A DNA stretch of 63,062 nt, filler included, from Neoconidiobolus thromboides FSU 785 (taxonomy: Eukaryota > Fungi > Entomophthoromycota), in assembly GCA_025603075.1 (NCBI GenBank). It is 12 parts of 12 records of this genome, joined end to end, with 100 filler letters (N's around TTAATTAATTAA, not from the genome) between each part and the next. Parts side by side here need not be neighbours in the genome. Positions count along the whole stretch, not along the records: positions 37,061 to 46,001 come from MU626671.1; 11 more parts are not named here. One strand, given 5' to 3'. The notes beneath the pieces are model-generated. The model saw only the letters and a program-made list of their open reading frames with translations. It did no database searches and was not told where the DNA came from. A program made the translations under genes and the position numbers. Every line of letters starts with the position of its first letter. Positions within the stretch are counted from its first letter, which is position 1. Of the stretch, positions 4,846 to 45,507 are shown piece by piece.

Positions 4846-5819
4846 TTATTTTTTTTTAATATAATTTAAAGCATCTTCTGCAATCAATCGATGAATTCTT
4901 GTTGTTGGGTGAGTATTATCCCAATAAAAATAATTGTTAGCTGAAACACATTTTTTATCTTTATCAAAACAACTATCTTTTGTATTTAATGTAGTATTCG
5001 TCAATGTCAATAACCAGAAATCTATAAATAAAGGAATCAAAATAATGTAAAATATATTTATTATTACTATTATCATTATTATTATTAGCATTTAAACTTA
5101 CCACGAAAATGATCTTCAATCAAATTAATCTTATTATATTTTTGTTGCAATTTTATAAAACTTTGACTATATAATTGATTAAATATGTTTACTTTACTTC
5201 TAATAAAACTTTCAAATGGTTCCCCAATAGCCTGAATTACTGGTAATAAGTCAATAATAGTTGAAGTTGATAATAAAATAGTATTAAAAGGATAAAGATT
5301 TAATAAATCTGTTAAACAGGTTTCTAACTCTTGAATGATAATGTTTGGTTGACTATCTGGTAATATTAATTCATTACCCCCAAAATTAAAAGTTATTAAT
5401 GTTTGATTTAAATGTTTATAATGTTGAAAGTCTTGTTTGAATTTATTTACTTGCTGTTTGCATCCTGGTATTTTTAATGTGCTATCAACTAAAATTAAAT
5501 ATTGTAAGTATGAATAAAGTTAGAATATATAAAATTATAAATTATAAATTATAAATTTACCATTAAATAATTCATTATTACTAGTAGCTTTAATATACGC
5601 ATATGAAGTCAAATTAGCAACTAAATCTGTCTTCAAATAATCTAACCAAGTGTTGCCATTCGTCAATCGTCCATTATAGAATAGCGGACTTGTATGGTTT
5701 AACAATTTAAAATAATTGCCATTATCACTATAATTATCGCCAAAGGAAATGATTCGTTTATATGTTGAACTCAAGACCGAAGTTATTAAAGTACAAAGTA
5801 GGAAGCATTGAAATTTCAT
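4846..5819 (-). CDS. Secreted SGNH/GDSL lipase-like protein with catalytic Ser replaced (FGDNYSD)
   Basis: Signal-peptide-like N-terminus, block I FGDNYSDNGN, GRLTNGNTWLDYL, and block V YWDNTHPT. Introns lie between the ORF pieces. Confidence 0.85.
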
Positions 5820-6540
5820 TTTCTTTTAAATTAAATTAATATTTATTAGTTTTATATTCTGATTTTTGATATTTTATATAGCTATTTTTTTTGATTGTTT
5901 TGAATAGTGAGATTTTCACCCCTTTTAGTCCATTTCTATGGAGATTGACAAGTTGCATTTGTTATTTAGTGGTAATAAAAAATATCTAGCTATTTATAAA
6001 AAGTGATTTGATTTTGATATTATAGTTTTGTATAACTTTAAAATTTTAATATTATTAAATTGAATTTCATAGAATACTCGAAATAGCATAGAATAAAACT
6101 TTAAATTTACCAAAATTCCAAATTTGATTGTTTGATTATATTTAGGTTGACACTTATAAAAACTCAACTTATTTGTAATAATGTTTTTAATGGCTTAGAT
6201 AGCATTCCAGATATGAACTAAATTTTAAAGAAATAACTTATTTTAATATTAAGTCAAAATTATTTAAATAAGTTAAAATTTCATAAACAAAATTTTACTA
6301 TCTATATATTATTTATATCTATACTATAATTCCATAAAATAATTTATTTGTTTTAATATACATAAAATACAATAAAAAAGTATAACCTTAATTTAAATCA
6401 ATTATTTTTAGATGATGTCATTTTCAATAAATATTCAATTAACAATTCTTGATGTGACATATCAATTATTTTAGATTTGAAGAAATAAATTCAATTATCT
6501 CAACTATTTTTTATATAAAATAATATAAAATATTACAGAA

Positions 6541-11946: not shown

Positions 11947-13068
11947 ACGTAATACGTGGAATAAGTATAGTGTATTATAGAATAGGAGTGAAATTTGTTG
12001 AATTAGCAAGTTCTGCTTCGCAAAATAAAATGTGTTATCTAAATTTACTAATTTCATGATATATTCATTCATTGATTTATGCCCTCCACTACTAAACTAG
12101 AAGTTTCATTGCTTTTTAAATAAACTATAATGCTATTTAGTTCGCATATTAAGAAAACCGATGCTTTAGTCTCATCTTTTACACTAGTAATGTAATAAAA
12201 TGAACACATTATCTTGCCTTCTATTCAAATTCCCCGACCCTCTCTCATTACTATAGCTAGCTTAAACTTCTTTCTATAACTATTAGCAATTATCAAAAGG
12301 GCTTTCTGCCTGTCTTATACAATCCCTTTTCCCTTTTACTAGTGTGTAATTAAATAATTTACAATAAACTCTCCTTCTTTACTTATCAAAATGAAACTGA
12401 AACTCGTGATCCTTATGTCCAGTTCCTTACGAAACCAATCCTCCCCTCCCTCTTATTATCTTGGAATATGACCTTTCTTGCCTCAGTGACCCCTTTAGCT
12501 TATCCTTTACCCCACTTTAATCATCTGTTTAACTCAAATTTAAAATAAATATCAAAAGGTATAGCTTTGTGCTCTCTAAAAAATAAAATTATTACCATTT
12601 ATTTATTACTATCAGCTATTACTAGTTTACAAATTTTCTTTAATTTTATAAAAAATACAGGACTTTCAGTTATGTAGCATTTTTAATTTTATTAACCGTT
12701 TATTATTTTATAATTAATGTAGCTGATATACTATAAAATTTTAGTTTACAATATAATAGTCATAGTAAAATTATAATTTAGTTTAATAAGTTTATTTCAA
12801 ACCCAATTTATGAGCTAAAAGCTATTCTTATACTTCTTTATGATGCTTAAGATAAGCCAGCTGTTAAAAAAATTCCTGTTAAATTTGAATAAAATAATAA
12901 AATATATTTAAATAAAAGAATAAAAAAGATTTATTAAAGTAATATGAATTCAACAAACCACACAATAATATAGATATAATTAAAACTAAGCTCATTATTA
13001 TGTATATTTTCAATTCTCTGTTCTGGTTACATCAATTGAAATTCACTTTAATTCTGTTCATTGTTGTC

Positions 13069-14439
13069 TTATTGTATTGAATGACTTTCATTTTCTGCAT
13101 TACTATTGGTTTCCATCGTAGCATTCATGTTGGCTTGATCTAATAAAATATTTTCTTCAACACCGTTATTCACTTCATTAGCCTTATTGACTTCATTACC
13201 GCTTTCACTATTCTCTTGTAGACTTACAGCACCATTTGTTGAATTCTCTATTGAGTTATTCATCATTGTCATAGGGAGGGTATGGAAAACATCAGCAATA
13301 TTAATTTGAGGTAAACTCTGACTACTTAAATGACCAAGCTCATTGTTCATATCTCCATTTCCATTTGAATCTTGATGGTTCATTTTGTTAAAATTACTGT
13401 CATGATTTACCTCAGTTGAAGTTGAATTTGCAATATTATTAAATGCTTGCTCCATACTTAGATTTGTTTCATTCGATTGATTAGGTAAAGTAAATGCTTG
13501 CTCAATATTAAAATTTGCTCCATTAGTTTCATTATTTCCATTTTCAAATACACCTTCAAGCTGTTGGTTGTTTTCATTAGAATGCCCTGATATACTATTA
13601 AATACTTGTGACATTTCATTTCCTTGTATATTATGCCCTGATAAATTATTAAATGGATGCATGATTTGACTAATATTTTCTGCACCATGGTTAGTCATCG
13701 AATTGTATGCATGCTCCATATTTATGTTGTTTTCTGTCCCTGGTGTTGTTAAACCATTATATGAATGACTCATTGGTATACTAGGATTATTATTGTGATT
13801 ATGCATATTATTAAGCGCATGCTCCATAGCTAAATTCGATACTGTATTTTGGGAAGATGTATTGGTAATGTTAAGATCCATATTTAAGTTATTGTTTGTC
13901 ATATTCATAGATATACTGGTGAGAGCCTGTTCTAAATTAATATCTCCTACATTTGATTTATGAATATCACCATTGTTTGGATTCACACTAAATGATTCAT
14001 TCAACTTTTTAGAACTAAGACCATTTAATGGCGGAGTTGAAATTTCATCTTTTTTCATTTCACTATCATCCCCTGCTATATCTGCGTTAATCCAAGCTCC
14101 CGACCTTTTAACTTTACCAAGTTTTTTCAAATGATATTGTACCGTTTTATAAGCTACATTTAATTTCTTTGATAATGCTCTTGAAGATTGACGTGGATCT
14201 TCAGCTAATAAAGCTTCTAATGTAGTAGAATCAATTTTTAAAGGTCTCCCAGCACGAGCATGTTTATTCAAATTAAAGTCCCCAGACTCAAACTTGTTAA
14301 ACCAATATTGGCATTTTCGATCATTGGTGGATTCAGGACCAAATACAGTACGTATATTATTCGAAGCTTCTTTCGGTTTCCTTCCTAGTTTGAATTCGTA
14401 TAGCATACAATTCCTAATATTTAATTCTTGATCTTTCAT
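13069..14439 (-). CDS. Mariner/SETMAR-type paired HTH DNA-binding domain fused to an Asn/Met-rich repeat region, no DDE domain
   Basis: aa 1-117 (IRNCMLYEFKLG...WFNKFESGD...RAGRP...DPRQSSRALSKKLNV...HLKKLGKVKRSGAWI) match the mariner transposase N-terminus up to the WVPH-equivalent motif. The remaining ~340 aa are low complexity. The ORF is a single intact, intronless frame. Confidence 0.9.
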   Translation of the reverse strand: MKDQELNIRNCMLYEFKLGRKPKEASNNIRTVFGPESTNDRKCQYWFNKFESGDFNLNKHARAGRPLKIDSTTLEALLAEDPRQSSRALSKKLNVAYKTVQYHLKKLGKVKRSGAWINADIAGDDSEMKKDEISTPPLNGLSSKKLNESFSVNPNNGDIHKSNVGDINLEQALTSISMNMTNNNLNMDLNITNTSSQNTVSNLAMEHALNNMHNHNNNPSIPMSHSYNGLTTPGTENNINMEHAYNSMTNHGAENISQIMHPFNNLSGHNIQGNEMSQVFNSISGHSNENNQQLEGVFENGNNETNGANFNIEQAFTLPNQSNETNLSMEQAFNNIANSTSTEVNHDSNFNKMNHQDSNGNGDMNNELGHLSSQSLPQINIADVFHTLPMTMMNNSIENSTNGAVSLQENSESGNEVNKANEVNNGVEENILLDQANMNATMETNSNAENESHSIQ

Positions 14440-18606: not shown

Positions 18607-20119
18607 GTTTTAATTTATATATTTATTATGATATAAATAGAAAATCAATTTAGTATGAGTAGTAGTTTTTATTAATATTTTCAGTTGATAATGAATATTT
18701 AGTATCAAAGTTTAATTTTTCCATTAAAATGGATTATTCTATTTTATATTGGAATTATTAGATTATACTACAATAAATTTTATTACAAGGCTTGGTTAAT
18801 TTATTATTAATAAGATTATTGTTATCTTTAATTATTTTGGAGAAATTCTATTATAAAAGTCAAAGTAATGTTCATGTCTTTTAATGCAGCAAAATAGGAG
18901 GTTTCTGTATAAAAGTTAGTGTTCTAATTTATTCAATTTACTTTTATATAGACGACAGATTGATTTATAAATGATTGAGGGCTAAGGTAGTGATAATAGC
19001 ATAGATACATAATCAAGATATAGTAAAAATCAATTTATTTTTTATGATATACAATAGAAGCAGTGACAGTTTTAGAAAAGTAACTATTGGATTAGTCATC
19101 CCAATGTAGAACGGAGTTATCTGATAAAAAAATTAAGGATAAAAATAATACATTAGTAATGATTATTTTAAACATCTGAAGTTTCTTTAGTTGTTTATTA
19201 TATTTCAATCTTTTGTTTAAACTAGTTTTTAAAGAACGCCAACAATGATAAGATGAAGTTCATCAAAATAAAGATTAAGTCTTTAGTAGAGTGAAAGGTG
19301 AATCATAAAGGGAACAATAGGTAATCAAAGAGCTTTTAATTCAGGATTTAATAGTTGTGAATGTGATAAAAGCTTGTAATCTACTAGTTAAAGTAAGAGT
19401 CTTATTTTATAGTAGAATAATATTAGTTATTACTTTAACTCTTTATTCGGCTTTAATTGACGAAATAGATAGCTAGCTTTGACTACTTAAACCTGCATTA
19501 GAAAAAATAAAAATGACAATTTTTTAGTGATAAAAGAATACAATATATTTAAGATTGAAGTTAACATATGAATATAATTCTGATATTTTATTGTAATAAA
19601 TAATTCATCAAACAATGTATCAAAAATTGTTTTGTTAAGTTTCTACTTTTAAAGTTATTTTTATTTCAAGTAATTTTGAGAACATTAATTTGAATTAATG
19701 ATACTTTTTTACATAAATCATTAAACTAAATAATATAAAAATAAAAGTATAACAATCATAAATTGAATATCCAAGCATCATTGAAATGACCGATCTCATT
19801 CTAAAAACAATGCTTGTCAACTTAATTCAATAACTTTTCAAACTCAAAGATTTCTTAAAAGATCGTAAATTAAAATTACATAACTCTATTTTAATTGGAT
19901 TAATTTGATTGTAACCAATTAAATCAGAAATTAACGTCATTTGACAAAATGAATAATAAACACTCTCAAAAGATGGAGTTAAATTCGTGTAGCATATGAA
20001 AAGTAAACCAAATATTCAAGTATATAAAGACAACTAAAATCATAACGAATACTTTTTTAAATTATTTTGTATCTTCATCCTTTTTTATTTCTCTTTAATT
20101 TAGAACAAGATATCTAACC

Positions 20120-37060: not shown

Positions 37061-37665
37061 GTGACTCCCTTTCTACTTTAATTCCTTATTCCAACTGGTG
37101 TACTGATGGTGATATTGCCTATGAGATTACTGAAAAAAAATTAACAGCCTTAAATTACCTATTGATTAAAAGAGTCTGTGGAGAAGATACTAAAAATCTG
37201 AAGTTCAAGAGTAAAAATTATTTACATTCTAAGCTCACGACGGAAAATAAGGAACAATTAGCCTCATTGAGTGAATCATCTTCAAACCAAAAGCTACTAA
37301 AGTGGAATATTAAATTAGGTAGTAATGATAACTCAGAAAAAGCAAACTATCAAAACATCAAGCTTGAAACAAAGAATGGTAAACTATTTGAGTTGAACTA
37401 TCTACATGTTGGTAGTCAAGAATCATATACTATAAGTTATAGCAACTCAGGTAGGTCATGGGAAATCGTAAAGAAGGACATAGGCCAAGAAGGATTAAAA
37501 CTTGAAATAGATTCACTTCAACTTAAAGTTTGCAGACTCCATTTCCAAATGAGCCAAATGAGATTTCCAGAGCCCATATTGTTAATCGTACTTAGTCATA
37601 TCATTAGTTATCAAAGTCAAATCCTTGATCATTTTACAAGCCCAAAGTTAAATATTTCATTTTAG
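37061..37665 (+). CDS. Orphan tandem family, paralog 1 (5'-truncated by gap)
   Basis: The frame is open from the gap: DSLSTLIPYSNWCTDGDIAYEITEK...PEPILLIVLSHIISYQ...ISF*. Homologous to 39122 and 41198. Confidence 0.85.
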
Positions 37666-38018: not shown

Positions 38019-38122
38019 ATATAAGGATATATTTTTTTGTTTAAGAATTTTATTAACAATCTTTTCACTCAAATAGCGCTTAAAAAATAGGAAGCAATGA
38101 AATCAAAAAAACATCCCCGTAT
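38019..38122 (+). mobile_element. MITE family copy
   Basis: TTTAAGAATTTTATTAAC...CTCAAATAGCGCTTAAAAAATAGG...AAAACATCCCC. Confidence 0.85.
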
Positions 38123-38272
38123 TTAGCTAAAACTAATTTAAAATCTAAGGATCTAGGCTTTAAAAAAATTGTTCAAAAATTACTTGATTGTAAGATTACC
38201 AAATAAATTACTAATTTTCTTGGATTGATTGTATTATGTTTTTCAATTTCAATTTAACTTTATTTTTATAAA

Positions 38273-38376
38273 ATAGGGATGTATTTTTGTGTTTAAGAAT
38301 TTTACCAAAAATTTTCCGCTCAAATAGTGTTTAAAAGATGGAAAAAGTAATGAAGCTAAAAAAAACACTCCCAAAT
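38273..38376 (+). mobile_element. MITE family copy
   Basis: GGGATGTATTTTTGTGTTTAAGAATTTTACC...CCGCTCAAATAGTGTTTAAAAGATGG...AAACACTCCCA. Confidence 0.88.
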
Positions 38377-39121
38377 GTTATATTTTTGCATTAAATTACT
38401 AAAACATATTATTTAAATGAACGAGATTCTTTAATCATTATCTATAATAATTAATATATTGTGATAAAATAATATTGAATCATTTATGTTTTTTACATAT
38501 TTGATTAATAATAGAGCGTAGTATTTATTATTTTACATTTAATTTTATACACAATTAGTCAAAAGCGAGTCTATTGGCCATTTGCCAATTTTAGTAGTTT
38601 ATTTATCTCCCCAATCAAAATTTTTGTAAGCTAGCCAGAATAATGACTTGAAGTCAAATTGGGGATATTTTAAAAATTAATTCAATAAAGATTAAGTTTG
38701 GATACTAAAATGTGACTTATATCTAATTAAATAATTTGCTGCGAATAAAGGGTTTTTAACATTGTATTATGAATTTTTAACTGTGTTATAATGAAAATAT
38801 AGTATTTTAGTATTATCCTTAAGTTTACAATAGTCTTTAAGGGTTTCAGTCGAACTTTAAAGGAATTGAGGTTTATACGATAACATTGTTAAACTATTAT
38901 ATTCTGTAAATTCCAAAAAACTTTGATTCATCAAAGCATGCTAGTAGACAGGATTCTAGGAAACTGCGTATTAATTTTAAGATTTTTTTCATTGATGATA
39001 ATAGCCCGGGGAGATAAAAAAATGGACTTATTTAGTAATTATAAAAAAGTATGAGAAATCAAGACAGTATAAATAAGCAACTAAATTACATAAAATAAAA
39101 TAAAAAATAACAATTATTTAA

Positions 39122-39799
39122 ATGTATAACATGGTATTAGAGTCATTGATAAAAAAATTCCGAAAACATAAAGTGTACAAAGGGGAAGCATTCGCTGCAA
39201 CATTTTCTACCTTAATCCCTTATTCCAATTGGTGCGCTGAGGGTGATATTGTCTATGAGATTACTGAAAAGAGGTTGACAGCCTTGAATTATTTTTTGAT
39301 TAAAAGAAGCTGTGATGGTACTGTTAAGAGCTTGAAATTTAAGAGTAAGAACTATTTAAACTCTAAGCTCACGACGGAAAATAAGGAACAATTAGCCTCA
39401 TTGAGTGAATCATCATTAAGTCAGAAACTTATAAAATGGGGTATTAAGCTACATGATAAAAGTAACATAGAAAAGTTGCAGTATCAAAGCATTAAATTGG
39501 AAACGAAAGATGGGAAGTTGTTTGCGCTGAGTTATCTAGATAATGGGATTCAACAGTCTTATGTGATAAATCATAACAATTTAAGTAAATCGTGGGAAAT
39601 CGTGGGAAATAACGATGATCAGGAAACATTAAAATTTGAATTGGATTCAATCCAGTTTAGAGTTTGTAAATTAAATTTCCAAACAAGTCAGATAAAGGTG
39701 CCGGAACCTATATTGCTAATCGTGCTTGGTCATATCATTAGTTATCAAAACCAAATCGCAGACCATTTTGCACACTCAATAGTAACTATTTCAATCTAG
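39122..39799 (+). CDS. Orphan tandem family, paralog 2 (225 aa, intronless)
   Basis: Intact ORF with a TATA-like element at about 39068. Aligns end to end with paralogs 1 and 3. Confidence 0.88.
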   Translation: MYNMVLESLIKKFRKHKVYKGEAFAATFSTLIPYSNWCAEGDIVYEITEKRLTALNYFLIKRSCDGTVKSLKFKSKNYLNSKLTTENKEQLASLSESSLSQKLIKWGIKLHDKSNIEKLQYQSIKLETKDGKLFALSYLDNGIQQSYVINHNNLSKSWEIVGNNDDQETLKFELDSIQFRVCKLNFQTSQIKVPEPILLIVLGHIISYQNQIADHFAHSIVTISI

Positions 39800-40501
39800 A
39801 CTAAATGGCTTGTATTTTTCATACCTTCTCTATAGTATTCTCATAATTCTATTTGCTCATATCTTTTCCGTGATCTAATTTAACACTATTTTTAAATAAA
39901 CTTTACAAAAACATTACTATTTGGCATTTTAACATTCTCTTCAAAAATTCTTTAATCTGGAATAATAGATATACTCAATCAATATAGAATGGAAACAAAA
40001 AAGAATACCCAAGGTATACTGATGTTTTTAATATTAAATAACTTATTTAATAAATGAGAAGAATGCTATTAAATTATCTAAAATTTAAAAATATTTTATT
40101 TTGTATAATTTCATAACAACTTGATTTATTCTAAGCTTTCACATGGCTTAACTTTATATACTAAATGATTGAAATCATTTCTTAATTACATAATACATTT
40201 TTTAAAAAGCCTTGAAGGAGCCGGAGGCTACCAAGTATTTTATTATTGAGGTAAAAGTTCATAAAGGATTGTGTGACTGATAAGAATATAGCTGGAAAGG
40301 AGTGGAGATGAAGAAGAAAGGAATTATATAATTGTGGAGAAAAACTCTAGCTCAACTTGATCAGCTTTGGGGTTGAATAAGGGCTATACTTAACGACTAT
40401 AAACTCTAATTACGTAATATTTTTTAGAAATCATAGGATTTCTATAGCATCATAGTTATACCATTTTAAATAACAAATTTAAATTAAGATTTTTTATCAA
40501 C

Positions 40502-40609
40502 ATATGGGGGTGTTTTCTTTGATTTCATTACTTTTTCATTTTTTTAAAGCACTATTTGAGTGGAAAGACTGTTAGTAAAATTCTTAAACAAAAAAATACA
40601 TTCCCATAT
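40502..40609 (-). mobile_element. MITE family copy
   Basis: ATATGGGGGTGTTTT...AAAGCACTATTTGAGTGGAAAG...AATACATTCCCATAT. Confidence 0.9.
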
Positions 40610-40844
40610 AATTAATCTTAACATTTTAACGCTTTAACTCTTATATCATTTTGATTTTATTGAGAGATCTGTTAATATCATTTATAAAAAAGAAATAAAA
40701 ATATACTGCGCAAGTTCAAATAAACATGATAAATACAATACTTCTAGAACTCATCATAATAAAATTATCTACAATTAACTATTACTTTTTCATTTATTAT
40801 AACACGCAGTAGTACTTTTGAGACAAAACAAATGCTATTTCTAT

Positions 40845-40950
40845 ATATGGGAATGCATTTTTGTATTTAAGAATTTCACTAACAATTTTTCTACTCAAAT
40901 AACACTTAATAGATAAAAAAAGTGATGAAGCCAGAAAAACATCCCTATAT
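40845..40950 (+). mobile_element. MITE family copy
   Basis: ATATGGGAATGCATTTTTGTATTTAAGAATTTC...AAAACATCCCTATAT. Confidence 0.88.
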
Positions 40951-41203
40951 ACTAACAATTCATTATGAGCCAATACAAAAAAACTCATTATAACTATGTA
41001 AATCAGAATATCCTCTAGACTCAACAGACTTTTTGAATTTTTTTAAATAAACCGGGGAGAATCCAATGCTACTCCCAAAAAAGTCTAAAGGCTTTTCATT
41101 TATCCGAAAGTATCAAGTTTTGAAAACTGCGAAGTCAACATATCAGCACTATAAAAAGATAAAGAAATATAGTCAATAGGTATAATAAAATTCAATCTTG
41201 ATA

Positions 41204-41881
41204 ATGATACTACATAGTATAATGACTAAATTCCAATCCAAGAAAGTGTACCAAGATACATATTTTAATAACTCAATAGATACCTTGATCCCCATTTCCG
41301 ATTGGAACTCAATGAATGAAATCGAGTACGAGATAACTGAAAAACAAATTGGAAATACGGATTATTTGAAAATTAAGAGACAGAGCCAAGACATTTCCAG
41401 TAATCTGAAATTTAAAAGTAAAGGATATGGATACTCTTATCTTACTACTGAAAGTAAGCAAAGATTGGTGAGTATTTCTGAGAATGGTACCTCTACTAAG
41501 AAAGTATTGAAATGGAAAATTAAGTTGGAAGAGGAGACTCAAAATGAAAAACTAAAGTTCCAAAATATAGCGCTTGAAACTAGGGATGGTAAAGAGTACC
41601 TTATAGCTTATAATTCAGGCGGTGATATCAAAAAGCTAAAGCTCAATATAAATAGTAATTTAACAGAGTGGAAGCTGAATTCTTTAGATAATGAAAATCA
41701 AACGGTGTTAAATTTTAAGTTTCCTGTAATGAATTTGAGAAAAAGGGTTCAATTTAAAGTTGAAAGGGAGCATATTGGAATTTCAGAACTTGTGCTATTG
41801 CTGATTATCACTCATTTGTTGAGTTATAAGTCAAATATTGAAGCCTTTTTTAACTCATCTTCCATCAAGCTGGCTTTTTAA
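41204..41881 (+). CDS. Orphan tandem family, paralog 3 (most diverged)
   Basis: MILHSIMTKFQSKKVY...TLIPISDW...YEITEKQ...LKFKSK...LETRDGK...SELVLLLIITHLLSY...KLAF*. Confidence 0.85.
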   Translation: MILHSIMTKFQSKKVYQDTYFNNSIDTLIPISDWNSMNEIEYEITEKQIGNTDYLKIKRQSQDISSNLKFKSKGYGYSYLTTESKQRLVSISENGTSTKKVLKWKIKLEEETQNEKLKFQNIALETRDGKEYLIAYNSGGDIKKLKLNINSNLTEWKLNSLDNENQTVLNFKFPVMNLRKRVQFKVEREHIGISELVLLLIITHLLSYKSNIEAFFNSSSIKLAF

Positions 41882-42589
41882 TTAACTTTTGACTGTAATC
41901 TTCTCCCTTTAATTTAATAATCGATCAAATTTTAGTTTTTAATAAAATTTATAAAAACAGAGCTTTTGATTAATATTTTATAAATCTTCAGTGCTGACTT
42001 GATATGGTCTTTTATTTGAAATAGAAATTATTTAGATACATTATATAATCAAAGTTGTTGAAGAATTTAGCATTAAATAATGGCCTATAAATAAGGGTAA
42101 GATATAAATAAAAATAAATAAATTAACAATCAAACATTTATAAAAGTGTATATCTAAGAAAAATTTAGGGCCATTTTAGATAATTAACACCTGATGTTAT
42201 ATACTCAGACCGATCCTTGAGAGAACTAAAGATAGGGTTGAAGAAGCAGTTGAGTTAATTATTGATAATGAACAAATGTAAGCTGAAGGTAAAGTTTTTA
42301 AGTCAAACAAATACTACAAAAAGTTCTCTAATTAAATTTTAATTGAAATTTCTGGAAAATACCAAAAAAACAAAAAAATGTTAAAAAAATGCAATAAATT
42401 TAAAAACAAAATGTCAATATCAAAAGTAACACACACTATTCAAAATAAAACTTTATAGTATACAATTCATATGAGTATAAAACTATTTAAATTCTTGACT
42501 CAGTTTTATTATAACATGTAAAAAATGTTACTGTTTAATACATTTTGTTGTAAAAATTAATCAAATAAATTATAACTTTGATCTACTGT

Positions 42590-43410
42590 ACGAAGTTATT
42601 TAAGATGTAATATAACCAATATCTTTCATAGTAATGTCTGAACTCAATGTGAATCTCGAGCAAGATAAGTTTCTTTATATAGCTGTAGTAACAAAGCATG
42701 AAGCAAAAACATTTCTCTTTAATAAATATTTTTTTATTTTCTTATAGTCAAGCATTGTAGGATGCCCACTACCTTTATGCTCATATAACCCTAATGAATG
42801 GAATTTTTCAACTACTAGTAAGCAGTTATAATTATTTTTGATACCTGCTGTCTTGTTAAAAGGTGCAAAATCTTTAGCTACGCTATATAAGCTCCCAATA
42901 ATAGTGGTACCTTAACCATGCTTTTTAACTAATCTTTCCAAATCATTAATATTATTATACTTAAGATTATATATATTCAGCTCCCCAAGACCAATACTAT
43001 CTCTAAAAGACCTACGTAGAAGCCTATATATATATGTTATTTTCACTACCACATAAGGGTTAAACAAGAGTAGCATTGGCTACATGTTCTGGTTGAATGA
43101 TCATAGTTACTTCTTTATTGATATATTCTGCTACCTTTTTCTAGAATAAACCTTGTGAGCCATCATCGGATACAAAAGCACCTGACATAACTACTTCAGA
43201 GTCATAACTAGCCACAGGTATGATCTTTGAAACTCACAGGTAATTATTATCGCCGACAATGATACTATCTTTAGTAGATGGTAGCCTTATTAAAGTGCCG
43301 TTTATTACTCTATCGCCTTCAGGCGCTCTAGTCTCAAAGTAATTTTTAAACTTTGCAATAAATTCCTGTTCCATTAAGTTGGGACCATTATTTGAAGTTT
43401 CTATGGTGTT
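42590..43410 (-). pseudogene. cqsA: CqsA/LqsA-like PLP-dependent (class II, AOS family) autoinducer-synthase pseudogene
   Basis: Manual translation: KNYFETR...DSIIVGDNNYL*...VVMSGAFV...F*KKVAEY...[19 protein letters not shown] /frameshift/ SFRDSIGLG...KYNNINDLERLVKKHG*GTTIIGSLYSV...FAP...[22 protein letters not shown]. This is collinear with Vibrio CqsA as recalled ([73 protein letters not shown]). At least 4 stops and frameshifts. The core at 42750-43374 is well supported and the 3' extension is weak. Confidence 0.75.
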
Positions 43411-45507
43411 TTTTTTCTCCTTTAACTAAAGCAGGTCTACAATTAGGACTGTTATTAACTTGGGCAAATTGTCTTAGTTTTTGGATTTTTTAATAGTCTT
43501 ACATTGACTTGCATTGGAATTTACAATAGCCAAATAAATCAGTTACTTTTACTTAACAAAGAATGGCATACCTAATGATGGTTTATGTAGCCTTGAAAAA
43601 TGGTAACAATCAAGCTATTTTCACCATTGAAATTAAAAGATTTATATATAGCTTCCGGATTTAGGATAAGTTGTCAGTTGGATATAATATATATGATGTG
43701 AGTCACTGGCTACATACTTTGTAACCATAGTTATTTTTAACAAGGTTATTACTATAATAGCTTAAATAGAGGCTTCTAAATTTATAGTAAATCGCCAATT
43801 ACATGCAAAATTAATAGTAAATAGCTCTCAATTATGCTTGTGTAAACATCTTTGTATTTAATAAGTTTTTATTATAATAGTTTAAATGTCATTCTCAGTT
43901 TCGTGTACTCTCTTGAATAAGTACGGTTTCGAATTTTCAATCAGTTTTTATGAAATGGAGGGAGATTTAATAAAAGAATAAAAAAGGTTATATCTACCAT
44001 AAAAGGTTATATTTATACTTTTAATTCTTTATTCAATTGTTAATTTTATCAAGCTATATTATGTACAGAAAAACTTTAGGGGTTTAATAAGTTAACTTTT
44101 GTAACGCATCCAAAGCAAAATCTTACGATTTTTTCTGAATTGAATTCTCTTCTTAACTAGCCATGCAACTTATGTCTAAAATGATTACTTTGGTTAATTT
44201 ATTTGCTCAAAAAGTAAATATTTTTGTGCACTCACTTTAACTTGGATATGTTTTTTAACTTATTTTCCTATAAAATTAAGTTAAACTTCTATTATCAGCC
44301 TCAACTTTCAATTTGTAAAAAAAATTCAACCTGTTTCTAAAAAATTCGAGTTGATTTGAAAATAAGACTAATATAAAATTATATATTTTTCTGGGAGTTT
44401 AAATTGATAAATTATTTATTTGAACGTCAAGATATTTAAAATTTTATTTATAATATCAAATTTTTGGATTTGTTTTAGATTAAATAGCTTTTTTATTGAT
44501 TCCACATCCAACAAGATGATATGGTTTATTTAAGTAAATTGTAAAGAATGAAAAAGAATAGAAGGTAAGATATTAGAAGAATTTGGGGATACTGAGGGCT
44601 TTGAACATTTTGAGTGCTTTGGCGTTAGGTTTGGTACGGCGGAAAAGATATTCAAATTCCTTATAAAGGGATTTTTGTCATTCGAACTGCAGTATTTTAT
44701 AAGAGGAAAACGCTAAGATTGATTTATAGTAGAGATTATGAAAGTTTCTGTGGACTACTCACACACTGAATAAAAAAATTAAATATCTTATTTTACAAAA
44801 TCTAAGTGTGCGCAAAACTTTCGAGTCTAATATTTGGTGATTTTGACGTTGTCATAAATGTTAATAAATTATGATTTTTTGTATAGTTTTTTACTCGGTG
44901 ATCAAGGTTTTATAATTTGTAATATAAATCACAAATATACTTATAGTATTTTTTTAAAATACGTTTAATTAGTTAGTACTACCTTGTAAATCAACATCAG
45001 GTCCTAATTTTAATAGTACACTACTTTTAAAACTGTCTCAAAGTTTCAGGTGGTCAACTTTGAATGTTAATTTCCTACTAATTAGTATTTAAAAAATAAG
45101 CTTTTTTTATAGTTATATTTGGCTTTCTCATATCAACGCTTATACAAATGTCACTTTTGTAAATTTTATATTAAATGAAATAACTTATTTTATCTCAGTT
45201 TAAAAGTGGGGCAGTTTTTGGAGGATATAACTAAAAATCATAAAAATTCAAATATCTCTTTATTTCTATTAATAACAACTTATGTAGCTTTTGGTATATA
45301 ATTAAAAGATATATGGGATGTTCCATAGAAAATTTCAGCTCAAATATGTCTATATTATATGATCATGGATCCATCAATCATAAGTTATTTGATATTCTTA
45401 ATGCTTTTTAAAACATAAGTAATATGGTATAAATGCATTTTATATAAAGTAATAATAACAGCAAATAGTATAAAAGGGAATTGATATACAAATCAATCAA
45501 CCTAGAA

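Follow-up and report, generated by a model that had tools for sequence, protein, structure and literature searches.

A probable decayed duplicate of a CqsA-like gene, and its intact paralog, in the fungus Neoconidiobolus thromboides FSU 785

Contig MU626671.1 (8,941 bp) of the Neoconidiobolus thromboides FSU 785 assembly GCA_025603075.1 is contained whole in the window analysed here, a stretch of 63,062 nucleotides made of 12 joined parts of this genome. Coordinates given without a locus name count along that whole joined stretch. Translation of the minus strand of 42400-43600 in all frames uncovered a broken coding region, hereafter the relic, that resembles CqsA, a pyridoxal 5'-phosphate (PLP)-dependent enzyme and the synthase of the autoinducer CAI-1 in Vibrio cholerae. 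A first-pass annotation, made from the sequence alone, had described the N-terminal half of such an enzyme in a region free of open reading frame (ORF) calls. All the peptides it quoted are present on the minus strand, and the CqsA strings that it set beside them match V. cholerae CqsA in PDB alignments. The relic is not confined to the N-terminal half, since it covers the whole protein, from Met1 to a terminal SKL and a natural TAA, save for an internal deletion. The region also carries a public gene model of 88 residues, at 43141-43514 on the minus strand. The parts of the locus are listed below; P0001 is the intact paralog and L001 its locus.

42573..43374, minus strand: coding region of the relic, CqsA-like PLP enzyme, from Met1 at 43374 to the C-terminal Ser-Lys-Leu (tblastn with P0001)
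42570-42572, minus strand: natural stop codon (TAA) of the relic, directly after the terminal SKL codons
43237-43374 (46 residues from the ATG), 43144-43233, 43063-43140 and 43027-43059, minus strand: stop-free pieces of the relic
42915-43031, 42678-42911 (78 residues), 42603-42674 and the final nine codons, ending in SKL and then TAA, minus strand: stop-free pieces of the relic in another frame
43375..43523, minus strand: 5' flank alike in relic and paralog, 149 nucleotides upstream of the ATG (blastn, L001 9852-10000)
42505..42572, minus strand: stop codon and 3' flank alike in relic and paralog, about 65 nucleotides past the stop (blastn)

The 78-residue piece at 42678-42911 had V. cholerae CqsA as its top match in a PDB search (E 3.6e-4), ahead of 5-aminolevulinate synthase (ALAS, 0.02) and serine palmitoyltransferase (SPT, 0.08). 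Its tail pairs with CqsA residues 328-347, and the alignment skips from residue 217 to 328, a jump that gave the earliest hint of an internal deletion in the relic. By themselves, the short pieces stayed below Pfam thresholds, and the shorter ones gave no family signal in Pfam or PDB, returning nothing or chance matches (an arenavirus nucleoprotein, TLR9). Among 1.84 billion representative proteins, the 78-residue piece retrieved the 375-residue protein P0001 (E 1.4e-15). A tblastn search of the 8.9-kb contig with P0001 then yielded three collinear blocks with a joint E of 1e-55, covering P0001 residues 1-116 (53% identity), 115-214 (45%) and 313-375 (59%). The homology of the relic to CqsA-like proteins is thus confirmed to be far above chance.

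P0001 comes from the same assembly, where it is named 'PLP-dependent transferase [Neoconidiobolus thromboides FSU 785]' and is encoded on contig MU626439.1 (38.8 kb). The first-pass annotation had pointed to the interest of an intact paralog, and this is one: its gene is intact and intronless, with 1,128 nucleotides encoding 375 residues. The gene is divergent from an adjoining intron-containing acyl-CoA oxidase (ACOX) gene, whose product ends in PKL; a TAF1-like gene, a gene of no assigned family and an acetyltransferase gene also lie within 10 kb. Relic and P0001 share 53% identity as proteins and 67.5% as DNA, and their C-termini are alike (...RFTL(N/S)SDITMKDI...SKL). In blastn, 42738-43523 aligned with L001 9852-10639 (67.5% over 791 nucleotides) and 42505-42741 with L001 10957-11190 (71%). 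Because this likeness reaches into both flanks, the relic appears as a decayed duplicate of a fungal gene, not as a fresh bacterial import or a contaminant. The 149 similar nucleotides upstream of the ATG favour a segmental duplication at the DNA level over retroposition, for which intron content offers no test here, the parent gene being itself intronless.

Compared codon by codon with P0001 as the reference, the relic carries eight disruptions, namely six in-frame premature stops, one frameshift and one deletion of about 106 codons, which bears out the earlier description of a pseudogene with stops and frameshifts:

43234-43236, minus strand: premature stop TGA, at P0001 codon 47 (TGT, Cys)
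43141-43143, minus strand: premature stop TAG, at P0001 codon 78 (CAG, Gln)
43060-43062, minus strand: premature stop TAA, at P0001 codon 105 (CAA, Gln)
43025-43035, minus strand: frameshift in a (TA)n run, near P0001 codon 117; the tblastn block frames differ on either side
42912-42914, minus strand: premature stop TAA, at P0001 codon 155 (CAT, His)
42735-42746, minus strand: junction of the internal deletion; P0001 codons ~215-320 (~318 nucleotides) are gone
42675-42677, minus strand: premature stop TAA, at P0001 codon 341 (CCA, Pro)
42600-42602, minus strand: premature stop TAA, at P0001 codon 366 (CAA, Gln)

The deletion takes out the PLP-binding Lys223 together with 15 more invariant residues. 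Nine family members have 46 invariant residues in common, all of which are retained in P0001; the relic retains 18, with 12 substituted and 16 deleted. In the catalytic core of the alpha-oxoamine synthases (AOS), the enzyme group to which CqsA belongs, P0001 keeps QSGY, His121, DESH and SLAK. None of these is whole in the relic: QSGY has become QPEH, His121 is replaced by Arg, the DES of DESH by EKF, and the region of the SLAK lysine is deleted. Because the catalytic lysine is gone and 28 of the 46 invariant residues are changed or deleted, the relic would have no enzymatic role. The decay carries no evidence for repeat-induced point mutation, since in the unpolarised comparison of paralog and relic, C>T plus G>A differences numbered 100 vs 83 for T>C plus A>G.

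It is also conceivable that the locus is a working gene, its stops being removed by short introns, by readthrough, or by recoding or a variant code. Two features lend themselves to such a reading: a perfect 30-nucleotide GTGAGT...TAG segment that spans the TGA and is used by the public gene model, and three stops opposite Gln codons, a pattern expected if TAA and TAG are read as Gln. The public model, built on the 5' part of the relic, ends at the TAG and has introns at 43426-43502 (77 nucleotides) and 43208-43237 (the 30-nucleotide segment that holds the TGA); splicing both reproduces exactly its 88 residues. Our RNA evidence consists of the contigs of one run, assessed by word depth, and these contained no joint at either intron. 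The model is most likely a gene-caller artefact. As a set, the TGA, the frameshift and the 106-codon deletion with its PLP lysine are not removable by splicing, and 12 invariant residues of the catalytic core are substituted. In the paralog and the adjacent genes the code is the standard one, and Gln is written CAA or CAG. RNA word depth was 2-4 over 42494-42961, and there was none across most of the 5' half of the relic; the intergenic DNA beside it had equally low depth, and the neighbouring gene at 41198-41881 reached about 1,320. Expression of the relic is therefore at background level, with no evidence for meaningful transcription. We consider a working gene at this locus very improbable. 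A ciliate-type code in particular, raised by the Gln-aligned stops and the AT-rich DNA, was rejected: the standard code leaves the neighbouring ORFs of about 225 residues open, CAA or CAG in the paralog stands opposite TAA or TAG of the relic, and the TGA, the frameshift and the large deletion would stand in any case.

The relic thus shows every feature expected of a duplicated, non-processed pseudogene (its reading frame is disabled, the genome holds an intact paralog and the flanks are homologous), and we conclude that 42573-43374 (minus strand) is, with high confidence, a non-functional, decayed duplicate of an N. thromboides gene whose intact copy, P0001, lies on another scaffold. Some observations weigh against so simple an account. 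Identity between relic and P0001 at codon positions 1, 2 and 3 is 0.69, 0.80 and 0.56; this gradient (2 > 1 > 3) indicates a probable period of constraint in the history of the relic. The low-depth RNA contigs over 42494-42961 leave room for some transcription. No synteny was found between the relic and P0001 loci beyond the gene and its immediate flanks, and either copy may be the ancestral one. A duplication at the DNA level would have taken place in the Neoconidiobolus lineage, after its split from the organism that encodes the protein P0009, and one of the two copies would then have lost constraint. The branch lengths in our tree, 0.97 for the relic and 0.31 for P0001, a roughly threefold difference, point to such a loss.

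When 5.8 billion proteins were searched by word index, the queries, P0001 and a nine-member profile, returned a small set of close relatives: P0011 of Mortierella sp. GBA30, P0012 of Emericellopsis atlantica, and P0003, P0004, P0005, P0008, P0009, P0010 and P0127. These score at least 453 bits, vs at most 373 for hundreds of bacterial CAI-1 synthases. The names of the fungal proteins in the databases are generic ('PLP-dependent transferase' or 'hypothetical protein'). No introns interrupt the gene at any of the five fungal-type loci inspected. A search of 185,579 species genomes of bacteria and archaea gave a top match of 40% identity, and true bacterial genes reached at most 37%. That top match, L011, is a low-coverage contig of 2.6 kb and 32.5% GC in a gammaproteobacterial metagenome-assembled genome. 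It has one ORF, which ends in SRL and groups with the fungal-type clade, and more than 1 kb of non-coding DNA; it is probably a misbinned eukaryotic contig.

Most members of this group end in a peroxisomal targeting signal type 1 (PTS1), scored here as a C-terminal [SAC][KRH][LM]. The relic, P0001, P0009 and the Mortierella protein end in SKL, P0005 in ARL, P0008 in AKL and L011 in SRL, whereas none of the 93 bacterial or outgroup rows has such an end. In the same clade, Emericellopsis (ARLV) and P0003 (NKL) have ends outside the pattern. For Mortierella P0011 (L005 5372-6507), the deposited 'partial' protein is two residues short, and the genomic stop gives ...SSKL.

We inferred a quick tree of 105 rows and a careful maximum likelihood tree of 64 rows; Legionella LqsA, which was not among the 80 best genome matches, and authentic fungal BioF lie outside the sampling of both. 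In the quick tree, a CqsA superclade separated from BioF, ALAS and 2-amino-3-ketobutyrate CoA ligase (KBL) with a support of 100, and the fungal-type clade (97) branched as the sister group of bacterial CqsA as a whole (84). In the careful tree, that clade had 100/100 support; the relic grouped with P0001 (99/88), then with P0009 (100/99) and P0003 (100/96), and BioF, ALAS and KBL formed the outgroup, set apart by a 100/100 branch. The Mortierella group (100/100) and the Emericellopsis group (99/92) were recovered inside the clade, without conflict with the fungal phylogeny. As a whole, the clade paired as sister with CqsA of the Vibrionaceae/Porticoccaceae (90/96) and lay within the bacterial homologues, along a weak backbone. 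In an approximately unbiased (AU) test, the alternative that places all bacterial sequences together was not rejected (delta lnL 6.5, p 0.31).

These trees bear on the possibility that the relic derives directly from a gene transfer from bacterium to fungus, in which a bacterial cqsA or lqsA landed at this locus and then decayed there. The family is otherwise overwhelmingly bacterial, the gene is intronless, and the best maximum likelihood tree sets the fungal-type clade beside Vibrionaceae/Porticoccaceae CqsA. Yet the nearest relative of the relic is the paralog in the same genome, at 53% protein and 67.5% DNA identity with flanks included, compared with at most 37% for bacterial genes. The relic retains the eukaryotic PTS1 found in the fungal clade and absent from 93 other proteins, and it falls within a 100/100 clade that includes Mortierella and Emericellopsis. 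Its place beside the fungal paralog, its SKL end and its clade position imply that any transfer long predates the duplication, and there is only a slight chance that the relic is a direct import. The earlier proposal of a horizontally acquired synthase is accordingly plausible for the family, where it is unproven, and fails for the relic, which is not a remnant of a bacterial import but an ordinary duplicated pseudogene.

For the family, a bacterial origin is favoured by the best tree, not proven. Horizontal origin is plausible because the distribution is patchy, the genes are intronless and the family is otherwise bacterial; it is unproven, since a placement of the clade outside all bacterial CqsA was not rejected by the AU test. 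Most simply, an old acquisition would have come from a gammaproteobacterial cqsA lineage, a transfer step that we infer. The gene would then have been domesticated with a peroxisomal signal and passed on vertically with many losses, until it was duplicated in the Neoconidiobolus lineage, where one copy died.

Several sequences around the clade have features of their own. L006 encodes P0008, a basal clade member, on a contig of 9 kb and 31% GC with densely packed, short-spaced genes, mostly ORFans. It also encodes a protein with a Peptidase_G2 tailspike-type domain and a flotillin/Band-7 protein, and it resembles viral (giant virus or phage) or bacterial DNA more than fungal DNA. The viral vector that L006 hinted at is unsupported, since scanning the viral contigs of IMG/VR gave no relatives. 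The nearest clade member to the Neoconidiobolus/P0009 pair, P0003, is encoded on L007, L008 and L009, which have overlapping ends and represent the same 1,531-bp unit, seen in three runs and seven contigs. The unit has 20% GC and, as its sole gene, that of the 391-residue P0003, and may be a small circle or a tandem array. P0005 (L010 1885-3041) has its N-terminal 27 residues in another frame, with 20 nucleotides between, an apparent 1-nucleotide frameshift that may be an assembly error or mark another decaying copy. P0002 (802 residues) is a natural fusion of two AOS-type domains; its C-terminal half resembles CqsA and clusters with the Vibrionaceae/Porticoccaceae clade.

The family assignment was assessed with the intact protein. 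P0001 carries PF00155 (Aminotran_1_2) and matches every AOS class in PDB and NCBIfam. Its best PDB match is CqsA (200 bits, E 4e-58, over residues 26-364), vs 120 bits for the next class, BioF/KBL. The alignment covers CqsA residues 30-374, with the SLAK PLP lysine and DESH in register. Among NCBIfam models, NF005526 (alpha-hydroxyketone-type quorum-sensing autoinducer synthase) is best at 323 bits, and the other models score far below their cut-offs (bioF 219 of 426 bits, KBL 166 of 460, ALAS 144 of 339, SPT 167 of 500). NF005526 also ranks above bioF in P0009, P0011, P0012, P0003 and P0008. In the ESM Atlas, both features and predicted structure (TM 0.94) put P0001 nearest to clusters that are, without exception, bacterial alpha-hydroxyketone (AHK) synthases, and no eukaryotic cluster of at least 50 members was among the nearest.

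The first-pass annotation had judged the element closer to CqsA and LqsA than to BioF, KBL, ALAS or SPT, and the PDB, NCBIfam and tree results agree with this. Its wording 'bacterial-type' needs qualification. The fungal proteins are CqsA-like, but they form their own 100/100 clade, and none of the six fungal-type members scored (304-370 bits; P0001 323) reaches the curated equivalog cut-off of NF005526, 428 bits, which the bacterial P0013 of Enterobacter mori passes (483). Signature columns, 36 in all, were defined by residues conserved in 85% or more of 83 bacterial CqsA-type proteins and found in 15% or less of 90 AOS proteins of other kinds. Sixteen of them are shared by the fungal-type clade (at 70% or more), and the loss of the other 20 cautions against assuming CAI-1-like chemistry. 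On these sequence comparisons, the fungal family is CqsA-like but distinct.

A related concern is that the relic could be a decayed copy of an ordinary fungal AOS enzyme, such as a peroxisomal BioF, KBL, ALAS or SPT. All AOS enzymes share the fold and the motifs on which the first reading of the locus relied, and fungal BioF is said, in work by Tanabe et al. from 2011, to carry a PTS1. The CqsA model nevertheless outscores the bioF, KBL, ALAS and SPT models on P0001, PDB gives CqsA 200 bits vs at most 120 for the others, and BioF, ALAS and KBL stand behind the 100/100 branch as the outgroup, in a sampling of rows without fungal BioF. Within this sampling, placement among BioF, KBL or ALAS, the kind of outcome named at the outset as overturning the assignment, did not occur, and an ordinary AOS origin is scarcely credible.

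The relic is genuine fungal DNA, as the first-pass annotation had argued. GC content is alike, at 26.5-26.7%, on the relic contig and the P0001 scaffold, and both carry one family of putative miniature inverted-repeat transposable elements (MITEs), at 80-94% identity; no copy of the family was seen on L002, the contig that carries the next relative:

38019-38131, 38269-38386, 40488-40626 and 40843-40950 (relic contig): MITE-like inverted repeat, about 100 nucleotides
L001 ~4940-5945, 12780-13690 and 19420-19600 (P0001 scaffold): MITE-like inverted repeat, 80-94% identity

In two further DNA data sets, contigs span 41000-45427 (20 differences) and 42269-44585 (12), a divergence of 0.4-0.5%. None of the differences listed for the two falls within a stop codon. 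By bridging the relic and both flanks, these independent contigs rule out contamination and misassembly, and they show that the relic is broken there too. Bacterial contamination or a chimeric misassembly, which a short contig (8.9 kb) and a gene family that is bacterial in most databases might suggest, can be dismissed as next to impossible given these bridging contigs, a GC content matching that of a 38.8-kb scaffold with intron-containing eukaryotic genes, the MITE family on both scaffolds, and neighbours that form a eukaryote-type tandem gene family with one highly expressed copy.

As to what the intact enzyme does, its C-terminal sequence predicts a peroxisomal protein. The PTS1 and, in N. 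thromboides, the adjoining ACOX gene are pointers to peroxisomes, a compartment that receives acyl-CoAs from beta-oxidation; conservation does not extend to the ACOX neighbour at the other fungal loci, among which no synteny was found. In a review of AHK signalling, CqsA is described as forming an alpha-hydroxyketone precursor from S-adenosylmethionine or 2-aminobutyrate and an acyl-CoA (PMC3376566). By homology with CqsA, the intact enzyme would be a PLP-dependent catalyst that condenses an acyl-CoA with a donor derived from an amino acid, and its product would be an alpha-amino-ketone or enamino-ketone made in peroxisomes. By this analogy, a peroxisomal acyl-CoA condensation of the CqsA type may be the reaction of P0001. 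A wider proposal is that some fungi (Neoconidiobolus of the Zoopagomycota, Mortierella, a few Ascomycota and other eukaryote-like sources) have a working peroxisomal CqsA-type synthase of old gammaproteobacterial cqsA origin, which would turn acyl-CoAs from beta-oxidation into alpha-amino- or alpha-hydroxyketones of the CAI-1/LAI-1 type, the relic marking a past duplication. We regard this proposal as speculative and, on balance, unlikely.

Alpha-hydroxyketone signalling (CAI-1, LAI-1, JAI-1) is regarded as bacterial, and LAI-1 acts on eukaryotic cells. Full-text literature searches, including surveys of horizontal gene transfer in early-diverging fungi, turned up no account of fungal or eukaryotic CqsA/LqsA homologues. 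The review of AHK signalling lists bacteria only (PMC3376566), and a term search of an interkingdom transfer survey of 44 early-diverging fungi returned mentions of neither N. thromboides nor the enzyme class. The fungal branch of PTS1-bearing CqsA-like proteins is apparently rare and undescribed. The relic is of value because it points to an intact gene of the same genome, as yet unstudied, and to a small clade of such enzymes in eukaryotes. If a working fungal synthase of the CqsA type were confirmed, fungi could produce, mimic or jam a bacterial quorum-sensing language, or else use an unrecognised class of fungal signal or metabolite. A eukaryote making related molecules would be a testable case of cross-kingdom signal production or interference, and the enzyme class would be added to the sparse secondary metabolism of early-diverging fungi. 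Should the product be unrelated to AHKs, the clade would still exemplify the recruitment of an AOS enzyme into peroxisomes.

Other features surround the relic. Three tandem paralogs on the plus strand (37162-37665, 39122-39799 and 41198-41881), about 2.1 kb apart, encode a protein of about 225 residues without a Pfam match. Its Atlas predicted model, of low confidence (predicted TM-score 0.51, mean predicted local distance difference test 0.48), resembles Tubby-C/LURP-one/scramblase-like proteins and DUF6593. The third copy is the neighbour noted above for its very high representation in the RNA run. A spliced RNA contig on the plus strand (43501-43795), with a 49-nucleotide GT..AG intron at 43602-43650, is divergent from the region upstream of the relic and corresponds to no annotated gene. 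A 42-nucleotide island at 42260-42301 matches very abundant transcripts and several DNA contigs that diverge beyond either end; the record with an RNA depth of about 5,900 shows a variant at 42265. In a plus-strand frame, the island resembles part of a small stress protein of the CsbD type (...DNEQM*AEGK..., the asterisk standing for a stop), and it may be a second gene fragment.

Among characterized systems, V. cholerae CqsA, the CAI-1 synthase (PDB 2WK7-2WKA, 3HQT, 3KKI), is the best solved-structure match both of P0001 and of the longest piece of the relic. Length and fold are the same, as far as the predicted model of P0001 indicates (TM 0.94 to AHK-synthase clusters), but identity is only about 33-36%, and the fungal proteins lie below the NF005526 cut-off. 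The fungal proteins also differ in their PTS1 ends and in having no adjoining cqsS-type sensor kinase, and the relic differs in its missing catalytic lysine. No CqsS/LqsS-type sensor kinase is encoded within 10 kb of P0001, and the neighbours in Emericellopsis and Mortierella are likewise unrelated. LqsA, JqsA and the other bacterial AHK synthases fall under the same model, NF005526, and in the same superclade (quick-tree support of 100 vs BioF/ALAS/KBL); none of the bacterial homologues sampled from Duganella, Nitrococcus, Polaromonas, Cupriavidus and Burkholderia falls within the fungal-type clade. In bacteria, according to the AHK review, lqsA occurs in lqsA-lqsS(-lqsR) clusters (PMC3376566), an arrangement without a counterpart at the fungal locus. 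Fungal peroxisomal BioF belongs to a different subfamily, as indicated by the bioF model score of P0001 (219 of 426 bits) and by the outgroup position of bacterial BioFs. It is, likewise, an AOS-fold PLP enzyme acting on an acyl-CoA and targeted by a PTS1, and so provides a precedent for the location proposed here.

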